From positions 49,042,001 to 49,106,000 of the forward strand of contig OZ320317.1 of assembly GCA_976226885.1 (NCBI GenBank): a stretch of DNA of 64,000 nucleotides, in the 5' to 3' direction. The notes beneath the pieces were generated by a model that saw nothing but the letters and a program-made list of their open reading frames with translations, did no database searches and had not been told where the DNA came from. Positions 2 through 15,459 of this stretch are shown in pieces; the stretch's first letter is position 1; each line of letters opens with the position of its first letter. The translations under genes were made by a program, and so were the position numbers. Source of the DNA: Iphione sp. A-MEVVRFRX5. Its lineage: Eukaryota.

Positions 2-636
2 CTGCAGGGCCACCGAAGGCGCGAGTTCAACGGACTGCTCCTGTCAGGAGAGTTTGGGGGCACAGTGATTGACTGGTTGATCGATACTGGCGCCTCGGCA
101 TCGCTCCTCTCCGCTAAAGTGTTCGAATCACTGCACGGAATTCCGCTTGGACCCGTGGACGCCCGCGTGTACGGTGTGGACGGCGCCCCGCTCGCAGTGC
201 GAGGATCCGTGGCAGGGATGGTGTACTTCCATGAAGCCGCGATCCCCATGCGAGCCCGAGTGGTGGATATGGAAGTGCCTGCTATATTGGGACTCGACTG
301 GCTGGACCGCTGGGAGGCGGTGGTGGACTCCCGGAAGGCGCAGGTGGCATTGGGCTGGATACCGGGAGAGACGGCGGCATCTTGGCGGTGGCAGCCGACA
401 CCACGGTCCCAGCGGGACAGGTCGGTTGGCTGCAAGTTGAGTGGCAGGGAGAAGGACTTCCGGGCGAGAGCATCCTGGCAGAGGCCAGCGGCCAGTTCGA
501 AGAAAGGTCGGGGCTGCGAGTGGCCAGGGCCGTGGTGTGTCCGCAGGAGGGCCGGCTGTGGGTGCCTCTGTGGAACCCGGGACCGGTCGCAGCCTGCGTC
601 TTCCGTGGTACGCAGCTCGGAAAGGGCATGTGGTGA
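2..636 (+). CDS. pol: pol N-terminal part: retropepsin-type aspartic protease plus PR-RT spacer; one apparent -1 frameshift near 365
   Basis: Frame is open from base 2: WLIDTGASASLLS (catalytic DTG at 83-91) and PAILGLDWL. It continues in the 382-636 frame (GGILAVAADTTVPAG...WVPLWNPG...GTQLG), a typical Gypsy spacer. Confidence 0.88.
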
Positions 637-3600
637 GCGACGTTGTGACCGCCTACGCGGCACGGGCGGAGGCTGTAGAGGCCGAGCAACAGGAAGCGGT
701 GAAACAGCTGTTAGACCAACTACCAGAAGGACTGTCGATCGATGACCAAGGCAGAATCCAAGCCATGCTGGAGGCACACCATGGCGTATTTCAGACACCG
801 AGTGGACCCTTGGGGTGCACCCCTGTAGTACAGCACCGGATCGATACGCAGGGGCACGCTCCCATCCGCCAACGGGCGCGGCGCCTACCGCCCCATAGGA
901 AGGCGGAAGTGGAGCGGGAGGTGGAGTCGATGCTGGAGAAGGGGGTGCTGGAACATTCCACCAGTCCGTGGGCTTACCCCCTAGTCCTGGTCAAAAAGAA
1001 GGACGGGAGCACCCGCTTCTGCATTGACTATCGGCGGCTGAATGCGGTGATAAAGAAGGACGCGTATCCCCTGCCTCGCATCGACGATACCCTGGATGCG
1101 CTGCAGGGGAACCGCTATTTTTCTGCAATTGACCTGGCCAGTGGCTACTGGCAGGTCAGGATGGACCCTGCCGATGCAGAAAAGACGGCCGTGTGCACTC
1201 CTGGAGGGCTATACCAATTCCGGGTGATGCCCTTCGGGTTGTGCAACGCGCCGTCGACCTTCGAGCGCCTCATGGAGTCCGTGCTGCGGGGCATGGTGGG
1301 CACGGACTGCCTCGTGTATCTGGACGACATCATTGTGCTGGGCCGCACGGTGGAAGAGATGTGCGCCCGTCTGGGGCGAGTTTTTCACTGGCTCCAGCAA
1401 GCCGGACTACCAGTCAAGGCCTCGAAGTGTCAACTGTTTCAGGAGGAAGTGGCGTACCTGGGCCACTGGGTGTCAGCCCGTGGTGTTGGGGTGGACCCAG
1501 AGAAGATTGCCGCCGTGACCGCCTGGCCTCGACCGCGCTGCAGCGAGGAGTTACGCGGGTTCCTCGGCCTCTGCTCATATTACCGGAGCTTTGTGGAGGG
1601 CTTTGCACGGATCGCGGCCCCCCTCCACACGATGGCGGATCGACTGGCGGAGTTTGCCTGGACGGAAGACTGTCAACAGGCCTTCGACCACCTGAAACAA
1701 CGACTGTGTTCGGCGCCGATCCTGGGCTACCCCTCCCTGCAAGGAAGGCTGTTGCTCGACACGGATGCCTCCGACACCGGCATCGGGGCAGTGCTGTCCC
1801 AGGTTCAGGACGGACAGGAGCGGGTCCTGGCGTATGAGAGTCGGACTCTCACCAAGCCCGAGCGGAATTACTGTGTGACACGACGGGAGTTGCTGGCCGT
1901 GGTGTTCGCCTTGCGCAAATTCCGCTGCTATGTGGGAGGGCGAAGCATCGAGATCCGGACTGACCATGACTCGCTACGGTGGCTATGCAGCTTCCGGGAG
2001 CCGCAGGGCCAGCTAGCCCGCTGGTTAGAAGAAATCTTCTGCCACGACTTGGAAATCATCCATCGGCCGGGTCGGAAACACGGAAATGCGGACGGCCTGT
2101 CACGACAGCGGTGCAAGCAGTGCACTAGGAAAATGATCCCAGAGGCCGTGGAGGTAGCCGCGGTCACAGCGACCCCGTGGGCGAGCGCTGCACGCCTCGG
2201 CAACGCGCAAGCGGCAGAGGAAGGTACGGAGACGATCCGCTGGGCCTTGGAGGTGGGGGGCGATCCCCCAGGGCTGGAGGTCGGGCTGACGTGGGAGGAG
2301 CGCCAGCTGCGGGCGGAGGGAGGCCGGTTGTCCTTGCGAGGCGGAGTGCTGATGCGACGCTGGGAGGCCGATGGCGGGCAGGCGGTGTACCAGGCCTACG
2401 TCCCCCGCACAATTCAGGCGAAGCTGTGGCAGGATGTTCACGCCGGCGCGCTGGGAGGTCATCTGGGCGCCGAGAAGACCCTCGGGTTGCTGCGGCAGAA
2501 GTGGTTTTGGCCCGGGATGCGCCGAGACGTGGGACGATGGATAGCAGCGTGCCAGGCTTGCCAGCAACGTAAGGCGCCGCCACGTTCGAAGCGGGCCCTG
2601 CTGCAGTCGCGACCAGTAAACGAACCCTGGGAGCTGGTGGCGGCTGACATACTGGGACCTCTGCCGGAAACGCCCCGGGGCAACCGGTATGTCCTGGTAG
2701 TGGCAGACCACTTCTCCAAGTGGACGGAGGCCTTCCCCCTGGCCGAGGCCACGGCTAAGGCTTCCGCAGAAGTCATCGTGCGGGAGGTGGTCTGCGGGTT
2801 CGGTCCTCCCCGGGTGTTCCATTCCGATCAGGGCCGCAATTTCGAGTTGGCACTCTTCACCGAGGTACTGCAGCTCCTGGGGGTGGAGAAGTCCCGGACT
2901 ACCCCGTACCACCCTCAGAGTGACGGCGTGGTGGAGCGCTTCAACAGAACGCTGGCTAACATGCTGGGCACCCTGGGGGAGGAGCGTCGGGCCGACTGGG
3001 ATCTGGCCCTTCCCTACGTGATGGCCGCTTACCGGGCTACCCCTCAGGGCTCGACCAACATGTCGCCAAATCGGCTCCTGTTCCACCGAGAGGTCAACCT
3101 GCCCGTGGAGCTCCGCTACGGGTACCCCGAGCCGGACGTGGTACAGCGGAACCAGTTCGCCAGCCAGGTAGAAGATGAGGTCCGGCAGGCCCACCAGCGA
3201 GTGGCAGGGCGCCTGAACCGTGTGGCGGAACACCGGCGTGACTGGTACAACCAGAAGGTCAGACCGCAAGGTTACACAGTCGGACAGAGGGTCTGGTTGT
3301 TTTCACCTCTTCGCCGCAAGGGGGTGCCCCACAAGTTCCAAGATTGGTGGGAGGGGCCCTGGCGAATAGAGGAGAAGCTGTCAGAGGTTACGTATCGGAT
3401 TGGTAAAGGCCCCAAGAGGCGGGTGGTCCACGCTGACCGGCTTAAGCCTGCTCGGGATGATGCTCAGGTCACTTGTGCCAGCCAGTCGGATAACCACGAG
3501 GGGGCTGGAACTGCAGCTGCTGAAGAGGGCGCAGCTGGGAGCGTAAGTGCGTTGTGGCACTCGCCGCTCTGTGGCGGAGCGGGCGCAGGAGCGGAGAACG

Positions 3601-4478
3601 AAGCTGCGACGTGGCGGGCAACGTCAGTGCGTACAAAGTCAGCACCGACCGCAGCTGCTAGAAAGGGCGTAGCTGGGAGTGTGCGTGCGCCGCCCAGGGA
3701 CGGAGAGGACGGAAGAGCGGGGAACGAAGCCGCGACGTGGCGGTCGACGTCAGTGCATGCAACGCAGGTGCGTGCAACGTCAACGCGCGCAGTGCCGGCA
3801 CGAGGCGCCCCCGCTCGGAATTCCACCGAACCAGACTGCAGGAAATGCAGTGGCGCCACTCGCCGTTGCGTCTCTCTGCCGCAGACCTCGTGTCATCCCA
3901 GCTGGAGCGAACGACGAAGTTGGAATCTCAGCGCTTCCGCAGGAGGAAACACAGCGAAAAGCGAGGCACGCCGCAACGACAGTAGGAGCAGCGTTGTGAA
4001 CAACCCCCGTCGGCGTATTCCAAGCCAGGTAGGCGCTTTACTCTGTGTGGCGCATGACTCGCCAGTGGGCGATAATAGGGACTGCAACGTTTGGACCAGC
4101 CGGGTTTGTTGCTGCAGGGTTAGGATGCGCAATAGTCGTACCGTCAGTACAGGCAGCAGCTTGGGGGTAAGGGCGCGGGAGGATGGCCGCAGGAGTAACT
4201 TTCGCAACTGCGCTCATAACAAGGGCGTGGAAGGGCCGGGGGCCGAACGCAGTAGCGATGATGTTCTTAAGGATAAGCGTGCTGTGGTCAACCGCTCGCC
4301 AGTAGGAAGGCCGAGCCACTTTTGTTCCATGGCAGGAACGACGTTTGCTGCTGTAGTAAACCGCTTGCCAGTAGGGAGGCCGAGCCACTTTTGCTCCATG
4401 GCGGGAACGACGTTTGCTGATCCTTGTTTTGTCTCCGCAGACGCACGACGCACTGTAGCCCAGCGCAACCGCAGGTGA
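627..4478 (+). CDS. pol: pol: reverse transcriptase, RNase H, integrase (HHCC, DDE, GPY/F-like) plus ~340-aa C-terminal extension; joined to the upstream part by a -1 frameshift near 627
   Basis: RT: YPLPRIDDTL, DLASGYWQV, MPFGLCNAP, YLDD (1317-1328). RNase H: LDTDASDTGIGAVL, TDHDSLRWL. Integrase: GHLG...CQAC, DILGPLP, HSDQGRNFE, YHPQSDGVVERFNRTL, WEGPWRI, VVHADRLKP (~3450). Confidence 0.96.
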   Translation, partial: HVVSDVVTAYAARAEAVEAEQQEAVKQLLDQLPEGLSIDDQGRIQAMLEAHHGVFQTPSGPLGCTPVVQHRIDTQGHAPIRQRARRLPPHRKAEVEREVESMLEKGVLEHSTSPWAYPLVLVKKKDGSTRFCIDYRRLNAVIKKDAYPLPRIDDTLDALQGNRYFSAIDLASGYWQVRMDPADAEKTAVCTPGGLYQFRVMPFGLCNAPSTFERLMESVLRGMVGTDCLVYLDDIIVLGRTVEEMCARLGRVFHWLQQAGLPVKASKCQLFQEEVAYLGHWVSARGVGVDPEKIAAVTAWPRPRCSEELRGFLGLCSYYRSFVEGFARIAAPLHTMADRLAEFAWTEDCQQAFDHLKQRLCSAPILGYPSLQGRLLLDTDASDTGIGAVLSQVQDGQERVLAYESRTLTKPERNYCVTRRELLAVVFALRKFRCYVGGRSIEIRTDHDSLRWLCSFREPQGQLARWLEEIFCHDLEIIHRPGRKHGNADGLSRQRCKQCTRKMIPEAVEVAAVTATPWASAARLGNAQAAEEGTETIRWALEVGGDPPGLEVGLTWEERQLRAEGGRLSLRGGVLMRRWEADGGQAVYQAYVPRTIQAKLWQDVHAGALGGHLGAEKTLGLLRQKWFWPGMRRDVGRWIAACQACQQRKAPPRSKRALLQSRPVNEPWELVAADILGPLPETPRGNRYVLVVADHFSKWTEAFPLAEATAKASAEVIVREVVCGFGPPRVFHSDQGRNFELALFTEVLQLLGVEKSRTTPYHPQSDGVVERFNRTLANMLGTLGEERRADWDLALPYVMAAYRATPQGSTNMSPNRLLFHREVNLPVELRYGYPEPDVVQRNQFASQVEDEVRQAHQRVAGRLNRVAEHRRDWYNQKVRPQGYTVGQRVWLFSPLRRKGVPHKFQDWWEGPWRIEEKLSEVTYRIGKGPKRRVVHADRLKPARDDAQVTCASQSDNHEGAGTAAAEEGAAGSVSALWHSPLCGGAGAGAENEAATWRATSVRTKSAPTAAARKGVAGSVRAPPRDGEDGRAGNEAATWRSTSVHATQVRATSTRAVPARGAPARNSTEPDCRKCSGATRRCVSLPQTSCHPSWSERRSWNLSASAGGNTAKSEARRNDSRSSVVNNPRRRIPSQVGALLCVAHDSPVGDNRDCNVWTSRVCCCRVRMRNSRTVSTGSSLGVRAREDGRRSNFRNCAHNKGVEGPGAERSSDDVLKDKRAVVNRSPVGRPSHFCSMAGTTFAAVVNRLPVGRPSHFCSMAGTTFADPCFVSADARRTVAQRNRR
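4281..4418 (+). repeat. 69-bp tandem duplication (23 codons) in the pol extension
   Basis: gctgtggtcaaccgctcgccagtagg...gacgtttgct is followed by gctgtagtaaaccgcttgccagtagg...gacgtttgct; protein AVVNR(S/L)PVGRPSHFCSMAGTTFA x2. Confidence 0.9.
4416..4440 (+). promoter_or_regulatory. Predicted 3' splice acceptor for a subgenomic ORF2 mRNA
   Basis: Branch-like CTGAT, pyrimidine tract ccttgttttgtctcc, then CAG ending at 4440. There is no ATG between 4441 and the Kozak-context ATG at 4635. Confidence 0.6.
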
Positions 4479-4634
4479 CGCCGCCCCGATCGACGCAGCT
4501 TCAGTGACCACAACGTGGCCGAGCGCTCGAACCATCAGCGCAGTTTCTATTGCCGCAGTAACAATCAGCGCAGGTTCCATCACCGCAGTAACGACCCCCG
4601 CAGCCCGGTTCGTCGCGCGGTGCCACTCCACGAC

Positions 4635-7213
4635 ATGGCGGAACACGACCCTACCCCCAGCACGTCAGACGTCCCCGATGGACCGCCCTATCCTTGCCAG
4701 GTGTGCAAGAAGGACTTCCAGGCGCTTGACTCTATGTATCAGCATGTGGCCTCGGCACACCAGGTCATTGGCTTTGGGTGGCTCTGCCCCTTCCCCAAAT
4801 GCCAAGGAGTAGCATTCAAGAGGAGGGCAGATTGGAAGCGCCATGCGGTTAAGGTTCATGGGTCGGAACGAGCCGCACACTCCACCAGCATAGAGCTTCT
4901 GAGATTTTCGGGGTACAACCCCACGTTCGGGGTGGTGCTAACCTGTCCCCCGGAGCGACAGGCCGAGTATGACCGTCGCAAGCGCCAAGACGAGCGCACC
5001 CGGCGGCGTGATCTCCTGACTTGGATCGGGCAGCGACGAGATCAGGGCGAACCCGAGGAGGACTCGGGCAACGACTCCCCCCCTCCCGGGGGCGCCGTTC
5101 CACCGTCAGGCTCCGCCACCGCCGGGTCGACCGCTGAGCCTGAAGAGGAGGAGCTCGAGGGGCCTCCGGGGGACGGCGGCTCCATCGCCGACGCCGGGCC
5201 GCCCCCCCCGCCAGGGGACGACGATCCCCTGCTGCCCCCAGCGGAGCCCGTCGCGGCCGGGACACCGACGCCGCGGGGCCCCCATACACCCTCGGGCACG
5301 GCAGGGTCGGAGGGTGCTGGACCGTCTTCTGCCACCACACCAGCCGAGAGCTCCTCATCCTCCCCGCCCCATCGGGAGGCCCCAGGCAAGACCTATGAGA
5401 AGAGCAAGGCCCGGAGCACGCCGGCCTCTTCCTGTGCCCGTACCGCGCCGCTGGTACCCACGCCGGCAGGCATAAACCTCGAGGGAGCCCCGGTGGAGAC
5501 CCACCGTCGGCAGCTGTTCCAAGAAGAGCCCACAGTAGTACCGCCGCCACCAGTACAAACACACCGCGAGCCCTCTCCCGACCGTCCGTCCTGGTCGGAC
5601 TATGAGGATGCCATCGAGCCGCCGTCTTCGGCGCTGGGGAGCAGGCACGGGGTGCCCCCCGAGGGCGCACGCCATTTCATCGCCCTCGCCGTCGAATGGG
5701 AGGCCGCGTGCTGACATCATCGTCAGAGGACGAGCCACGCACCCCAGGGAAGGGGTGGTGGCCCAGCCCCGCGAGGTCCAGGACACCGGGCCACCGGGGT
5801 CAGCGGGGTCGCAGCCCTCCCCCCGCGAAAGTAAGCCGAACCGAGGAAGAAGAGGAGGTGCGGTTAGATCGTTGTCTGGGACCCGGGTGGGAGCGGGCGG
5901 ACGTCCACGCCACCACCGTCATCGTGGAAGACTCACCAGAGGCTTCACCTCGGCTGGCTCAAAAAAAAGCACAGCCGTCACCCCGCGCCGAGATGCCGGA
6001 TACTCTGCAGCAGGCCATGGCCGCCACCCTTGGGGAGGTGGTCTGGCTGGCGGATGACAGTTCACCCCACTCTGATGCCGGGGTAGAACTGACAAAGGCC
6101 CCAGCCACTACAGCCGAGCTGGATGAGGAGGTGGCGGTGTTGACCGCCGATTCCACGGGACACCTCCGCGCTGGGGACCGCGGAAGATTGGTCCGAGGAG
6201 CTGCCGGAGGACGGGGGAGAAGGGTCGGCCCGGTCTCCAGTACCAGGAGAGGACGGGAGGCAGGAGGATGTACCGGCTCCACCCCGTACAGACGACAGGT
6301 CCACGACGGGCAGCCCGGTCGAGGGGGACAGGAGGCCTCCAGCCCCCGGGACCACCCCCACGGCAGGGCAAGGACACGGTCCAGAGGAGCAGCCGGGAGG
6401 GCACGCGGGGGAATACACCCCGCCCACGACGGTTGGAGTAACGGGGCAAGGAGAGATCGCCACCCCCGGGGGGAGCCAGGGCCAACCAACGCTGACTGGA
6501 GTGGCGACGCTCACCCTAATAGGAGCCACACCCCCGGGTGGAGCAGCGGCAACGCCAGACGGAGACCAACCAGATACGGAGGAACGCCCTCCAGCCGGGC
6601 CGACAGGGACGGCACTGCAAGGCGCGGGGCGAGCGGCACAAACGCCCAGGAGGGCCACGACCCCTGTCCGCACTCTTCCGCCGCTGGGGCCCCCCCGAGG
6701 GCGGGGGGCTGGTTCTCCAATTGCGCAGATTAACCCAGCGGCATCTCCAGGCAGGGGCCGGGGGGCGGCAGCAAGCCGACAGGGAGCACACATGGAGCCT
6801 CTCCCCGACGCCCGGGCGGGGCGCGTTACGCATACAGGTGGTCCTATGAGGACATTTCCCCCCCGGCCTCCGAGGACGAAGGCATTCCCGATGCAGTATA
6901 CCAATGGGCAACGAGCCTGCACGTGTCCCGGCAGTCGGCACCACCACCCGGCTGGCAAATCATCAGCGCTTCGAGCAGGGCGGAAGTGCAGATATCTGGC
7001 TGGAATGAGGTCAAGATCCACTTGGATCAAACCCTACGGTTCCGGCTGTCGGGAGAGGGGGCCGCCTGCGACCTAATGGGGTGGCACGCCCGGCGGCCAG
7101 GGACTCTCACGCGTGGACGGGCCTACCACCGCTTCACCTCCTGGGTGGACTGTCAGGAGGGAGAGGAGGTAGTGGCCGAAATCAAAGAATTATTCGTGGT
7201 AAGACTGGGTTAG
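4635..7213 (+). CDS. Gypsy accessory ORF2: two N-terminal C2H2 fingers, long Pro/Gly/acidic disordered region, ~130-aa globular C-terminal domain; three apparent frameshifts (~5700, ~6145, ~6820)
   Basis: gacATGG at 4635; CQVCKKDFQALDSMYQHVASAH (C-x2-C-x12-H-x4-H) and CPFPKCQGVAFKRRADWKRHAVKVH. Compositionally coherent reading passes through ORFs 4515-5714, 5696-, 6144/6501- and 6923-7213, ending ...KELFVVRLG*. Confidence 0.75.
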
Positions 7214-10700: not shown

Positions 10701-11261
10701 TGAATTCCCATCTCCCTTATAGACAATACGCCATTGATGGTCACTCCCCGATGAAATAACATATCTCTTTTCATGTTTGGTATTAAACGTTCAGCTGATT
10801 GAGAAAAAACACCTAGCTTATCTATAAGAACGCCTTGAAGGGCTCCGACAGAGAGGTGTGTACAGCATGGTGGAGGTGTTGGGTAGAATACATCAGTGCG
10901 CTAGAGTAATTAGCAGTCAGTTGGGTTTGGCATGTTGACATGCATGGATTTCCGATGTAGCAGAGGCAGCTAGCAATTTCCATCAGCACGACAGCCTTCA
11001 CATTGGCGATTCTTATCCTCCTATCTCCTTGCTTTATGTTATCCACCTTATTTTGCCTGGTTATTTTAATCCATGTTTAAGTTAGCCGTTTTAAGATACC
11101 ATCCTGTTAAGGCCTGATCTTACATATAAAAGACGTATACGATATATAATATGCTGATGAAACTCGCTGCGGGTCTTTCATTCTTTCTGTAAATCTTTCT
11201 CTGTTGCTGGTCCAGTTTTTCTAGTTCCCTCTGTCCATTTGTCCACAGCTCTCTCTTCCTT

Positions 11262-11314
11262 TGTCTCTGTCTCTGTCTCTGTCTCTGTCTCTCTCTGTCT
11301 CTCTCTCTCTCTCT
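11262..11314. repeat. (TGTCTC)n/(TC)n microsatellite
   Basis: Directly visible. Confidence 0.95.
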
Positions 11315-11561
11315 GATTGTATCTAGAATTCCAGTTTGAGTTTTTGTCATGCCTCGTGTCACACAATAAGTTCAGATGCTCTTTCAAAAAATAGTCCGCG
11401 GACGTACGGAGCTCCATGTGTTAAATTTGTTCACTCCCAGTCGAATCAGCCTATTTGGCAACTGAAATGACTTGTCAAGCCCGTGAGCGCATGTATATCC
11501 ATTAGATCATGAGTGTAACCAATAACCTATAATGGTGCCTGTAGTTCTAATCTCCTTGGGT

Positions 11562-11650
11562 AGGAATTAAGAAGGAGTTCATTACAGATGGGAAAGTCCA
11601 ATGTTAGAATTAAGACCGAGTTCATTACGGATGGGAGAATCCGATGTTAT
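11562..11650. repeat. ~43-bp tandem duplication
   Basis: gaattaagaaggagttcattacagatgggaaagtccaatgtta followed by gaattaagaccgagttcattacggatgggagaatccgatgtta. Confidence 0.8.
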
Positions 11651-11785
11651 ATATCCAGAGTAAAGCTTGTCCATTGACATTTACCAGCAAAGAGGTGGAT
11701 ATATGATAGAAATAGATGTTGGGGTAGACACCAAAACTCTTGAAAGCCAGTTGTGAATCAGATGGTTTTTATTGGGCAGATGTTT

Positions 11786-11821
11786 CCCGACGTTTCGTCG
11801 TGTGGGTGACTTCTTCAGGGG
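11786..11821 (-). ncRNA. Minimal type-I hammerhead ribozyme
   Basis: Minus strand reads CCC-CUGAAGA-A-GUC-acccacac-GAC-GAAAC-GUC/GGG: conserved core, 3-bp stem II, palindromic ACGU stem III, GUC cleavage triplet, 3-bp stem I. Confidence 0.8.
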
Positions 11822-12076
11822 TTGTGGTGTGTATGAAATGTCTGTATAAGGTACCTTTGAGTGCAGTTTGTGACCATTTTCTGTATAAGGTACACTTGAG
11901 TGCAGTGTGTGCCAAATGATGTTTGTGGCTGTACTGACTTGAGGTGTGTGTATTGTAATGCATAGATTTGTGTGCATGATACAATCGTGGAACCTTCAAG
12001 ACAATATTTAACTTTGAATTATGCTCGAAGAGAAAAAAACAGTAATACACATGTAAACAGTAAAGGTTTCAATTTT

Positions 12077-13373
12077 CTACATTCTCCTATTGGGTTTGAT
12101 CAGTCCGTACCCTACCAAGGATTTTTTTAAATCTTCACCTACATCTTGATTAACCTTATCCACTATTGTCAATAGGTCAAATAGTATCTCATTAGATGGT
12201 ACAAGATTATTGTGAATATGGTATCTGTTCCTGGGACTGGGCTTATAGATTTCACTGCTAACAACTGACTGACTAGTAGGTTCAGGTACGTATTCTTCTG
12301 GTGCTGTGTTTAGCGATATGAGGTCCTCCTCTTCTGGTAGGTGTACCGGTTTGGAATTTTCGGTGTTGTCGGGCGATAGCTGGCTGCTTTCGGTGGCTGT
12401 TGCGGTCTTGTCCTTGCTTGGCTCTACATCATCTTCATCATCATTGCTGTCTGTGTCTTCCTCACTGCTGCTGTCTGATTCTGACATCGCCAGGTCTTGG
12501 TCTAGGTTGATGTAAAGGCCATCATCGTCGCTTAGCTCAGGTAGGTGTATGGTGCGTGCTGGTCATTCTTGGCGGTCTTTGGTTGCTGGAACCACCAAGG
12601 TTGGAGATTTCTTCGGGGATTTACGTTTGATGCCCAGTAATGGATGTTGATGTCTGCCTGACTTCCTTATAGTAGGATCAGGCAGTTCAGGGCTCATCTG
12701 GATTACTCTTTTTTCTAACGTCTCATGTCTTCTTATACGTTCAGTGATGGATAGTAGTTTTTCTGTTGTTGGAGAGTTGTTGGGCGGTGCTTTGCTCACT
12801 GTTGCCGTGGCAGTTCGTGGGGGTGAATTGGATTGTCTCGGTGTGGAGTGTTCATGACTGGTAACAGGTGTTTTGATAGGGACTTCAGTCTCTATACATC
12901 GTTTCTTCTCCACTGGTTGTGAAGTTTCCACGGTTGCGGGGGTTTTTTCAATGGTTTTTGGGTTGTCTTTCAACTTGCCACTGTATGGTTGGACCTTTTG
13001 TTCTGCAAGTGAGAGGTTGATATATCAGTCAGATTTGATAGTTTTCTGGTGTGATGTGTTTTGCAGGAATAATACGCTTGTTTGATTTCACCTTTCTGTG
13101 ACATCTCACTTTGTCTATGATGGGTATTGAGATAGGGTGTTCATATTGGTGTAATCTTAGTGCATGGCATCTCAGTGTGCTTGGTCGTGTGAAGCTGGAT
13201 TGGCACAGAAAACACGGGTACTTACCCCGTTTGGACAGTTCTTCTTCATTTGTGTGAAGCTTGTTGAGATGTCGTAATAGGGCTCGAGTGCTGCAGAGCC
13301 ATTTGTTGCAGAAGGCACATTTGGCTGGTTGTTGGTGATTCTTCTTGGTTTTTGCTGTGCTTTGTTGAGGCAT
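12077..13373 (-). CDS. PLE-borne C2H2 zinc-finger protein. Predicted exon 1 13373-13226, intron 13225-13003, exon 2 13002-12077 with one in-frame TGA (12563-12565); unspliced form is a 114-aa two-finger protein
   Basis: CAFCNKWLCSTRALLRHLNKLH and CFLCQSSFTRPSTLRCHALRLH (both C-x2-C-x12-H-x4-H). Donor G|GTAAGT and acceptor CTGAC...ctctcacttgCAG are phase-compatible with ORFs 12563-12973 and 12077-12487, which are in the same frame. Confidence 0.7.
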
Positions 13374-13429
13374 CGTTGTTTGGGTGATGAATTTGCCGTA
13401 CGCGGCAAGCGGTGTTGCCGTCTGCGCGG

Positions 13430-13514
13430 TTATATATCCTTGAGTGCAGCTTGTGCAACTGGGTCATGGTTACGTCATGCTTACATCACAGTGATCCATT
13501 ACGTCATGACGTTA
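13430..13514 (-). promoter_or_regulatory. Internal promoter: TATA box plus ATF/CRE-like site cluster
   Basis: TATATAA at 13430-13436 (-), ~57 nt upstream of ATG 13373. Plus-strand TTACGTCA (13470-77, 13499-506), TTACATCA (13481-88) and TGACGTTA (13507-14). Confidence 0.55.
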
Positions 13515-13717
13515 CAGTTTGTTGTTGAGACCATGCGACGAGCGTGTTTCGAGAACACGTATCCAAGCTTCTTCTAGCCGGAGTCTATGATTTTTCGTGG
13601 TCGCAGAGTTGTCGATAATGGTGCAAATAATGTCGTTAGGATGTATGTCGTGATCATGCAAGTGTTTTACCACCGGTAAGTCCCTGTTCCTGATGGATAG
13701 TTGATATTTGTGTTCGC
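13512..13717 (-). pseudogene. C-terminal half of a PLE GIY-YIG endonuclease (5'-truncated at the EH motif)
   Basis: EHKYQLSIRNRDLPVVKHL...RLRLEEAWIRVLETRSSHGLN matches the EH...H...E..WI..L.T..P.GLN pattern of Penelope endonuclease C-termini. Confidence 0.8.
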
Positions 13718-15459
13718 TATGATAGAAATTCCGCATAGATTGACAGAGAGTTGTCCTTGTTGTATTTTTATATATCTATCTTAAAACTGAATAATGCTCT
13801 AATAATTGGCTGGTTATTATCATTACCATCTCAATTTCTTCCTTATATATAGAATTCGCTGTCTTATTTCCTCATAGATGGTTCTTAAAGCATTTGAAAC
13901 AAACATCTGATACACTACTTCAAAGTTGTATATTTGAATCACTAGGGGCAGTTATGAGCTATAGTTTGTCAGATTATGTGGCATTAGATGCTTTAACCTT
14001 CTCCCTTTCAGGTTCGCCTCAAAAGAGACGGCAGATATTCAAAGACGCCAGATTACCGTGGGAGAGTGGGGGAAGGACCCTCAACGTTTCCCACTTTTGA
14101 AGTGGTAGGAGCGTCATCCGCCTCAGTCGGTGAACCGCATGGAAGAAGAGGATGCATTGCAGTTGTTTGTTGGGCAATCGTAGGGCTTCGGCCGATACAA
14201 CAGTCCCCTTTCCCATCCGTACCGCCACAATTCTTCTGTTCTCGATCCTCCAACAAGTAAAGGCATAGAGTAAAAGAGTCTCAGGGGCTAGACAGTGTAT
14301 TTGTCATCCTCCTACTCCTCTTTGTGCTCCCACTCCCCTGCCCTTGTTAGCATCTCCTCTTTGCTGATGACAGCGGGTTAACTCTATAACCCGCTCATCG
14401 TGTGGCCGCCTGTAAGCACCACCACCACCACGTCCCCTTGTAACTGCCTGCCCGACAAGCTGCCATCTCGCCTGGCATCGGTTGTAGGCCGGCAGGCTCT
14501 GGTTGATTCTGCTCCCAATTCTCCTGTTTTCGCCCGTTCCCATCCGCTCCAGCTACCGCCTTCTCCTTTATCGAGGACATCAATAACGAGCTGCCCAATC
14601 GCTGGCATCGCTCTGGCCGGCCATATGCCAGGGCAACATGAACCAGGACGTTCTGCTAATTCTCTGGTATTCCTCCGACTAGCGGACCGTGTGCAGCCTA
14701 GCCAAGATATCATCATTAATGCTCGAACTGATGGGCCCCATGCCATAGGATTACACGCCGACCTTGGCAGTTACGTTATTGAGTACAAGGATGTATTATG
14801 TCGGGTTAAGGCTACCTGCCATTATTGATTACCTTGCTGATTGAGAGGAAGACATAGTTCTTCTCGTTCTCTCCTAGTTCTATATGCTGATTTATAGCCA
14901 CTATTAGCCGGCACATGGTACTTATCTCCCGCTCACCGTCCTCTATCAAACGTTGGAGTTTCGCAAGGGCTGCGTAACTAGTGTAGCCCTCAAACGCCTG
15001 TTTGAGAGAGGATCAAAGTGATGTAGTGAGGAAATAAATTGCTTGCAATAGGTAGTTCCTCTATTCATATGGCTACTTTGTCTTTGATCTAACTTCTTAA
15101 CCATTGCTAAAATGCCTTAGCCTAGTACGGCCGGTCTACTCTCATTGATTCCACAAATTCTGTTGCATGTCCTTAGATAATTACGATAATGATCACTACA
15201 TATGAGGTTTTACAAAGGAAACGAATTTCTCGAGAATCTACCTCGACAAAGGCTCATCAGGGATCAAAGGGAATTCGCGAATAGCAGCAAAGGCATGAAT
15301 AAAACAACTTTGCTGTACATCAAAACAGCTGAATGCAAAATTCTATACAGTCATGACTCGTTACCCAAACAACTGCCATTCCCACCAAATTCGTATGCAT
15401 ACCAGATAATCTGGTTGTAAAATGGGCATACTTGCTCCTCCTAGTGGAGGAAATTTTGC

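Follow-up and report, generated by a model that had tools for sequence, protein, structure and literature searches.

A predicted zinc-finger gene behind the endonuclease in a lineage of Penelope-like elements, traced from a truncated copy in Iphione sp.

Within a 64,000-nucleotide stretch of the Iphione sp. A-MEVVRFRX5 genome (contig OZ320317.1 of assembly GCA_976226885.1, positions 49,042,001 to 49,106,000 of the forward strand; hereafter the window), the segment 11714-13717 on the minus strand is probably a 5'-truncated insertion of a Penelope-like element (PLE) which contains an endonuclease (EN) of the GIY-YIG type, is flanked by a target-site duplication, and belongs to a lineage carrying a conserved second open reading frame (ORF2) with a predicted intron. 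The product of ORF2 comprises two C2H2 zinc fingers, an 'NVRFRIV' segment, a long disordered region that is first basic and then acidic, and a C-terminal helical hairpin. We also propose a wider model, to which we give somewhat less than an even chance, in which ORF2 is an accessory gene of the whole lineage, its promoter is internal to the element, its intron is dual-coding (finger 2 being both intron and exon), two zinc-finger proteins are made from the gene, and truncated copies seed stand-alone, potentially expressible zinc-finger genes. Positions are those of the window unless a relative is named, and all assignments are made from nucleotide sequences and the proteins predicted from them.

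A second gene behind the endonuclease

Using a full-library phmmer search, 20 library proteins were found to match the 74-amino-acid EN frame of the window at E<=1e-3, and the best of them were PLE proteins in which a reverse transcriptase (RT) is joined to the EN. The alignment with the relatives P0006 and P0007 opens at query residue 7-8 and covers the remaining 68 residues, which are 49-52% identical to the EN end of these proteins; the 74-amino-acid fragment itself had no match in Pfam, and the Pfam GIY-YIG domain is present in P0006. The RT is missing from the window copy through 5' truncation, and the closest relatives of its EN are the C-termini of RT-EN proteins, in which the Pfam domains RVT_1, DUF8422, HTH_animal and GIY-YIG are found. 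No relative of the RT-EN protein was found in the PDB. Two other proteins from the EN search, P0008 and P0009, were set aside as not being PLE proteins, the latter being a bacterial immunoglobulin-like protein. Six loci selected by their EN were fetched, namely L001 (with P0006, a full RT-EN protein of 769 amino acids), L002, L003, L004 (with P0007, 777 amino acids), and the more distant L009 and L010, whose EN identity is 45% and 39%, respectively.

In every one of these six relatives, an ATG-initiated ORF encoding two C2H2 fingers is located 128-240 nt past the EN stop codon. When alignments of ORF2 served as queries, the finger part gave 4 and the downstream part 13 further clusters, all from Logan assemblies, and among the contigs found in this way the EN lies upstream of ORF2 in L005, L006, L007/L008 and L011/L012, while L013/L014 begin inside ORF2. 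The preliminary description of this stretch had assigned the zinc-finger gene to the element family and had named family copies without the zinc-finger segment as the observation that would speak against it. The assignment held, since the segment is carried by all six EN-selected contigs and by four ORF2-selected ones. The part of ORF2 behind the fingers is also shared among the relatives. The C-terminal 65 amino acids of the downstream frame in the window are 40% identical to those of L005 (E 6e-12), PELPDPTIRKSGRHQHPL of the window matches PEYDPTIRKKRRTEHPL of the relatives with the motif PELPDPTIRK..HPL in common, and the acidic Ser-rich block of the window matches as well. ORF2 is a single continuous frame in L011 (about 400 amino acids) and in L004 (at least 406 amino acids, ending with the contig).

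The substitution pattern was examined as the ratio of nonsynonymous to synonymous substitution rates (dN/dS) between L005 and L007, L006 and L003, with L002 and the window also compared for the EN. The EN gave ratios of 0.05 (L007) and 0.12 (against L002 and the window), the finger-1 exon gave 0.07, and the intron-encoded finger-2 segment gave 0.14-0.23, as against 1.08 in a control comparison in the wrong frame. For exon 2, the amino acid identity was 63% at a nucleotide identity of 65%, with dS saturated. Judged from this pattern, ORF2 is kept as a protein by purifying selection over the same time span as the EN.

These data bear on a different explanation, in which a host zinc-finger gene was picked up once, or mobilised in trans, by the Penelope machinery and ORF2 does not belong to the family. 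Such an event has a precedent, as PLE machinery can disperse intron-containing host genes (PMC3846280), and ORF2, with its promoter-like region and its intron, is built in the style of a host gene. However, ORF2 is found at the same place in every relative examined, across an EN divergence of about 50%. Among the 17 clusters, all of them assembly ORFs without names, no host-type or named homologue of ORF2 was found, and every ORF2-cluster contig that was fetched had a PLE context. ORF2 stays conserved between elements with an EN identity of just about 50%, and its dN/dS is well below 1; it is therefore a feature of the lineage, and a one-off capture is exceedingly improbable. As far as sequence comparison can show it, ORF2 is a conserved gene of this PLE lineage. 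In one relative, L003, ORF2 itself is interrupted at 3419-4753 by an ORF for an apurinic endonuclease of the type found in long interspersed elements.

Ends of the window copy, the hammerhead motif and the unit

The sequence TATGATAGAAAT occurs at 11702-11713 and, as an exact second copy, at 13718-13729, and it is the sole exact pair of 12-mers in 11000-14500. The two copies, which have no strand of their own, enclose the end of the GIY-YIG EN, a spacer with a cAMP response element (CRE) and a TATA box, the C2H2 ORF, a 3' untranslated region (UTR), a hammerhead and AATAAA, all of which had been described before and were confirmed in the sequence. On the minus strand, the EN C-terminus identified by phmmer (about 68 residues of a 5'-truncated RT-EN ORF, 13512-13717, with its stop TAA at 13514-13512) directly follows the upstream repeat copy, and homology to the relatives opens right behind the repeat, at residue 7-8 of the 74-amino-acid ORF. 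At the other end, the 363-nt 3' UTR (11714-12076, minus) contains the AATAAA polyadenylation signal at 11768-11773 (minus), and the downstream repeat copy lies 55 nt beyond this signal. By our own estimates, any 12-mer pair is expected by chance about 0.4-0.5 times in 3.5 kb, which is not rare, and a 12-mer match within such narrow end zones has a chance of about 6e-4. The repeat thus coincides with both independently defined ends of the element, and its reading as a putative target-site duplication is supported by this position. The strand composition shifts across the element, with an A- and C-rich strand bias at about 11500-13500.

The hammerhead was searched with a descriptor written from the published minimal features of PLE hammerheads (PMC4209133). 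On both strands of the 64 kb, this descriptor gave a single match, a minimal type-I motif at 11821-11786 (minus strand), and it gave none in 200 shuffled sequences. The motif consists of CUGAAGA, one extra A, a helix II of GUC/GAC, GAAA and a palindromic ACGU, and cleavage is predicted after GUC, between 11789 and 11788, with AATAAA following 15 nt past the cleavage site. The same motif was found behind ORF2 in L007/L008, L005 (cut there by the contig end) and L009, and also upstream of the complete L004 unit. Helix II changes among the loci with pairing kept (GUC/GAC, GCUC/GAGC, GAACA/UGUUC and GGCC/GGCC), the third pair of helix I varies (C-G, A-U, U-A), and an AATAAA-like run lies 10-30 nt after the hammerhead in four of four loci. 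From the descriptor match and this covariation, we accept the hammerhead as a feature of the family and as a predicted ribozyme of the minimal type. A conserved 'tail' beyond the AATAAA that follows the hammerhead was looked for and not found, and folding of the 3' UTR with RNAfold was not more stable than that of shuffled sequences (z -0.19).

The order of parts in the relatives allows the unit to be placed. In L004, a 3' UTR motif common with L001 is followed by the hammerhead, AATAAA, a 5' region that holds an N-terminal coiled-coil ORF, and then RT-EN, the spacer and ORF2, which on its sequence is the usual partial-tandem (pseudo-long terminal repeat, pLTR) arrangement with ORF2 inside the unit. 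Together the loci show, at the level of predicted features, a lineage layout in which an N-terminal ORF, RT and GIY-YIG EN are followed by the spacer, ORF2, the 3' UTR, a minimal hammerhead and AATAAA. This layout can be set against the idea that the arrangement is a tandem or chimeric artefact, with the zinc-finger ORF being the upstream 'ORF1' of a following unit and the 12-bp repeat having arisen by chance. Partial tandems are the usual arrangement of PLEs, an upstream ORF1 is known from some of them (PMC8557442), a promoter downstream of the EN could drive a following unit, and a 12-mer pair in 3.5 kb is in itself unremarkable. However, the repeat falls on both ends, which were defined independently of it; in L004, the RT is preceded by an N-terminal coiled-coil ORF belonging to the unit itself, ahead of which lie a hammerhead and AATAAA, and ORF2 is again placed after the EN; and the order of ORF2, hammerhead and AATAAA is found in four loci. 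We therefore regard an artefact of this kind as very unlikely and keep to ORF2 as an internal part of the element.

Some further observations concern the 3' UTR and the insertion site. An AT-rich palindromic motif, ATATG.AAAAAATTTTTT, opens the 3' UTR in L001 (4360-4387), L004 (204-230), L005, L007, L011 and L013, and is absent from the window copy. In L013, which is of an L001-like subfamily, a hairpin (GGTGACTTAAAAGTATAGATCACC) occurs three times in the 3' UTR at 1100-1439, a CUGANGA core is missing, and this subfamily may have replaced or lost its hammerhead. Next to the insertion site in the window, a 43-nt tandem duplicate is located at 11564-11649, and a (CT/GT)n microsatellite at 11249-11310 lies about 400 nt away. 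Microsatellite targets are preferred by some PLE clades; the duplicated target of the window copy is not a microsatellite.

Spacer, predicted intron and products of ORF2

The EN and ORF2 are separated in the window by a 138-nt spacer (13374-13511, minus), which is recognised as promoter-like by its motifs. It carries TGACGTAA at 13506-13499 and 13477-13470, and TATATAA at 13436-13430. The density of CRE half-sites over nine loci is 7.5 per kb within spacers and 1.2 per kb elsewhere (approximately six-fold), and that of CCAAT boxes is 6.2 and 2.1 per kb, respectively (approximately three-fold). The ATG of ORF2 is preceded by A at -3 in all of the seven correctly placed loci and followed by G at +4 in five of the seven, with C at +4 in the window. 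These features fit a separate promoter for RNA polymerase II (Pol II) in the spacer. In our proposed scheme, ORF2 would be transcribed from such a Pol II promoter, made up of CRE, CCAAT or TATA boxes ahead of an ATG in a strong Kozak context, and its mRNA would end at the poly(A) signal which the element itself provides. Alternatively, ORF2 might be expressed by reinitiation on the full-length RNA. The term bicistronic, as used in the preliminary description, thus covers one of two possible expression modes, and the spacer resembles a promoter of its own.

A box of the form CACAA.CTGCACTCAA.GG with a TATA-like run was also observed twice just upstream of the hammerhead, as a tandem pair of 32-nt units at 11841-11872 and 11880-11911 (repeat family D2, together 11841-11911 of the 3' UTR). 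The same box occurs once more in the TATA region of the spacer, at 13424-13455 (66% identity). This box may be a promoter module which is repeated in the terminal region and reads into a downstream tandem copy.

Exon 1 of ORF2 (13226-13373, minus) starts with the ATG at 13373, encodes zinc finger 1, and ends in phase 1 at the conserved donor G/GTAAGT (the slash marks the splice border). The finger frame of the window, with 114 codons, and the downstream frame, which runs from about 13000 to the TAG at 12079-12077, are offset by +1, and the same offset is found in L001, L003, L005, L006, L007 and L013. No ATG is present near the start of the downstream frame in members with the shifted frame. 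At the same codon, just before finger 2 and in phase 1, a donor of the form GTRWGT is present in all ten loci covering the site, as G/GTAAGT in seven loci, G/GTATGT in L001 and L013, and T/GTATGT in L004. The nucleotides of the donor are kept though the encoded residues vary (GK, GM, CM). Where the conserved frame changes to +1, a pyrimidine-rich acceptor in phase 1 is found in every locus: CTTGCAG/AA in the window, CCGCAG/AT in L001, CTCCCAG/AT in L011, CTCCCAAG/RA in L003, L005 and L007, CTTCCCAG/AA in L006, and CCTTTCAG/CC in L004. From these sites, we infer a conserved intron before finger 2 which ends at the +1 frame change. In the window this predicted intron is 223 nt long (13003-13225, minus), with the donor GT at 13225-13224 and the acceptor AG at 13004-13003; it is in phase 1 at both borders, and its reading in the frame of exon 1 yields zinc finger 2. 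A GT at 13091 was tried as the donor and rejected, as it fails to join the frames. The comparison of L011, in which ORF2 is continuous, with L005, in which it is shifted, is informative: the two differ by one extra or missing A just upstream of the AG, on the intron side (CCCAG/AT versus CCCAAG/RA). A 1-nt indel inside the intron is as expected if the spliced message constrains exon 2.

It can be argued instead that there is no intron, and that ORF2 and the downstream frame (ORF3) either are separate genes or are read as one through programmed ribosomal frameshifting. Most members have an overlap between the two frames, for ORF1 of some PLEs a frameshift with a pseudoknot has been reported (PMC8557442), and two distant relatives have no clear in-phase donor: L009 has none at the equivalent site, and L010 has a donor in another phase. 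However, the shift is +1 and not -1, and the downstream frame lacks an ATG near its start, as noted above. In addition, a consensus donor is kept at the nucleotide level in ten of ten loci over different codons, no acceptor is out of phase, and the indel by which continuous and shifted members differ falls within the intron, right at its edge. We consider that the absence of an intron is unlikely, and that splicing of ORF2 remains the better explanation of the two frames. L009, which comes from an ENA metagenome assembly, carries an EN, a two-finger ORF, an acidic Ser-rich ORF in the +1 frame and a minimal hammerhead in 2970-4287 and 4828-4865. It looks as if the ORF2 gene is older than the intron, or as if the intron is different in L009. 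L009 and L010 also suggest that ORF2 was gained long ago.

The coding capacity of the intron (finger 2 and NVRFRIV) is under purifying selection, so the simplest reading is that there are two products. The unspliced RNA would give a short protein with two fingers, and the spliced RNA would give a protein in which finger 1 is fused to the long C-terminal part. We propose that copying uses the unspliced RNA, and that the intron persists for this reason.

Both fingers of the window have the form C-x2-C-x12-H-x4-H with all eight zinc ligands present; they score 22.3, below the Pfam cut-off of 27, and relatives pass Pfam (zf-C2H2_4 40.1, zf-C2H2 35.5 and zf-met 35.0), the score of 40.1 being that of P0022. 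When modelled with AlphaFold from a nine-row alignment, the short isoform contained two beta-beta-alpha fingers with a predicted local distance difference test (pLDDT) score of about 90 and was of low confidence elsewhere. Foldseek and a PDB sequence search gave only generic tandem DNA-binding fingers (CTCF, Kaiso, Tramtrack, ADR1 and ZBTB17), with ADR1, ZBTB17 and CTCF as the closest proteins of solved structure. Exon 2 (12077-13002, minus, with the stop TAG at its end) encodes the disordered basic, the acidic Ser-rich and the C-terminal hairpin regions. The last 30 residues were modelled as a helical hairpin of two helices with pLDDT 86-92, for which Foldseek gave no match. No match to exon 2 was found in Pfam and no usable one in the ESM Atlas, and the L004 product had no match in Pfam. 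The 114-amino-acid finger ORF of the window gave no match in a word-indexed protein search, and neither did its 136-amino-acid C-terminal ORF by exact look-up. From the modelled folds, a nucleic-acid binding and an interaction module can be inferred for the ORF2 protein, and, with less certainty, it might be a DNA- or RNA-binding accessory factor acting in targeting, in the assembly of ribonucleoprotein particles or in the control of its own transcription.

The window copy itself has decayed. It is devoid of RT and most of the EN, and, judged from its frames, it could yield truncated products at best. Two stops which the preliminary description had not flagged are relevant here. First, the frame of exon 2 is broken once, by an in-frame TGA at 12565-12563. 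Where this stop stands, the relatives encode ordinary residues and show no stop, so the TGA is private to the window copy or at least is no family feature, and selenocysteine was rejected for the same reason. Second, the intron-retained frame stops at 13031-13029, just before the position of NVRFRIV in the relatives. The earlier proposal of a bicistronic EN-containing family dispersing an expressible zinc-finger gene is thus sustained for ORF2 as a lineage-wide gene, and it does not extend to the long product of the window copy, which is cut by the TGA.

Several points weigh against the reading of this insertion as a member of a lineage with its own promoter, intron and ribozyme, besides the donors of L009 and L010 already described. 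No second copy of any part of the element was found in the 64-kb window by blastn or tblastn. The nominal P values for the motifs in the spacers, 1e-6 for CRE and 0.003 for CCAAT, overstate the enrichment, because the loci are related and two spacer borders are a few bases off. Helix II of the hammerhead has only 3 bp in the window copy, as compared with 4-5 bp in the relatives, and the Rfam models Hammerhead_1, _3, _II, HH9 and HH10 gave no match at the gathering score or at E<=10; this negative result is expected, because the motif lacks helix III. Finally, the function proposed for the ORF2 protein is derived only from its fold class.

Comparison with known elements

Canonical EN-containing PLEs are described as single-ORF elements (PMC8557442, PMC6515669), and extra ORFs have been reported upstream (ORF1, in some Chlamys elements) or in the EN-deficient Athena/Terminons (PMC8557442). 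The present lineage shares with the canonical groups (Neptune, Nematis and Penelope-Poseidon; PMC8557442) an RT followed by a C-terminal GIY-YIG EN with CCHH and DKG in the relatives, a terminal hammerhead, intron retention, variable target-site duplications, 5' truncation and an upstream partial copy (pLTR). It differs from them in that a conserved gene of some 400 codons separates the EN stop from the hammerhead, with a promoter-like spacer in front of it and a predicted intron inside it. In the searched literature, which did not include Repbase and subscription papers, no description of a downstream zinc-finger gene in EN-containing PLEs was found; within that literature, a conserved second gene after the EN is a layout not described for these elements.

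The motifs of the EN allow the lineage to be placed further. Just before GIY, relatives (P0006, P0003 and L011) have a linker of the form C-x2-C-x4-C-x2-C, a region not included in the window copy, and relatives also have C..C between GIY and YIG, H...H and DKG. In the Hydra clade, by comparison, CCHH is absent from the EN and DKT takes the place of DKG, and Penelope/Poseidon proper have no CX2-5CxxC finger in the linker that joins RT to EN. The linker finger, together with DKG and CCHH, therefore excludes both Hydra and Penelope/Poseidon proper, and by these motifs the lineage points to Neptune or Nematis.

If the wider model is true, it has several consequences. With promoter, gene and poly(A) site all retained in 5'-truncated copies, the genome would be seeded with many stand-alone, potentially expressible zinc-finger genes. 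These could control the element in trans or be taken over by the host, and a role of truncated copies as dispersed regulators, or as raw material for host zinc-finger genes, would become testable. Little is known about the expression and targeting of EN-containing PLEs, and a conserved second gene would add a new component to them; it would also give a concrete reason for the retention of introns in these elements. In addition, annotation pipelines will label ORF2 copies as host zinc-finger genes unless the architecture is recognised.

Other systems resemble this lineage in part. Athena/Terminons are likewise of PLE type and have accessory ORFs besides RT as well as hammerhead motifs. However, they are telomere-associated, giant, and without EN or with a stand-alone EN, whereas the present element is about 5 kb long, has its EN fused to RT and is inserted internally with a target-site duplication; no telomeric repeats were found in 11700-12100. 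The Penelope-mobilised genes of Adineta vaga (PMC3846280) are similar in that an intron-containing gene lies between Penelope termini with a target-site duplication. In those cases individual host genes were mobilised in trans, whereas here every relative has ORF2 in cis with RT-EN, and the gene is without a host counterpart. The minimal hammerheads of metazoan PLEs (Cervera and De la Pena 2014, PMC4209133) also lack helix III, are reported to be active as dimers, and are located in the terminal region. The helix II of the Schistosoma and Drosophila motifs has 6-8 bp, in contrast to 3 bp in the window, where one motif is present in a solo copy. As the window hammerhead has no helix III, activity would be expected only as a dimer.

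The window also contains a Ty3/Gypsy pol (RT, RNase H and integrase) at 441-4475 on the plus strand, followed by ORFs at 4515-5711 and 5696-6730 without Pfam matches, and these two ORFs showed no similarity to the Penelope ORF2 by tblastn. A functional likeness can be drawn to the spliced accessory or env mRNAs of retroviruses and some long terminal repeat retrotransposons, where a processed or subgenomic RNA serves to express a gene located 3' of the polymerase gene and the unspliced RNA is kept as the template for copying. The lineage described here would differ from them in using target-primed reverse transcription, in its likely internal promoter, and in having the intron within the accessory gene, where the intron itself encodes a finger.

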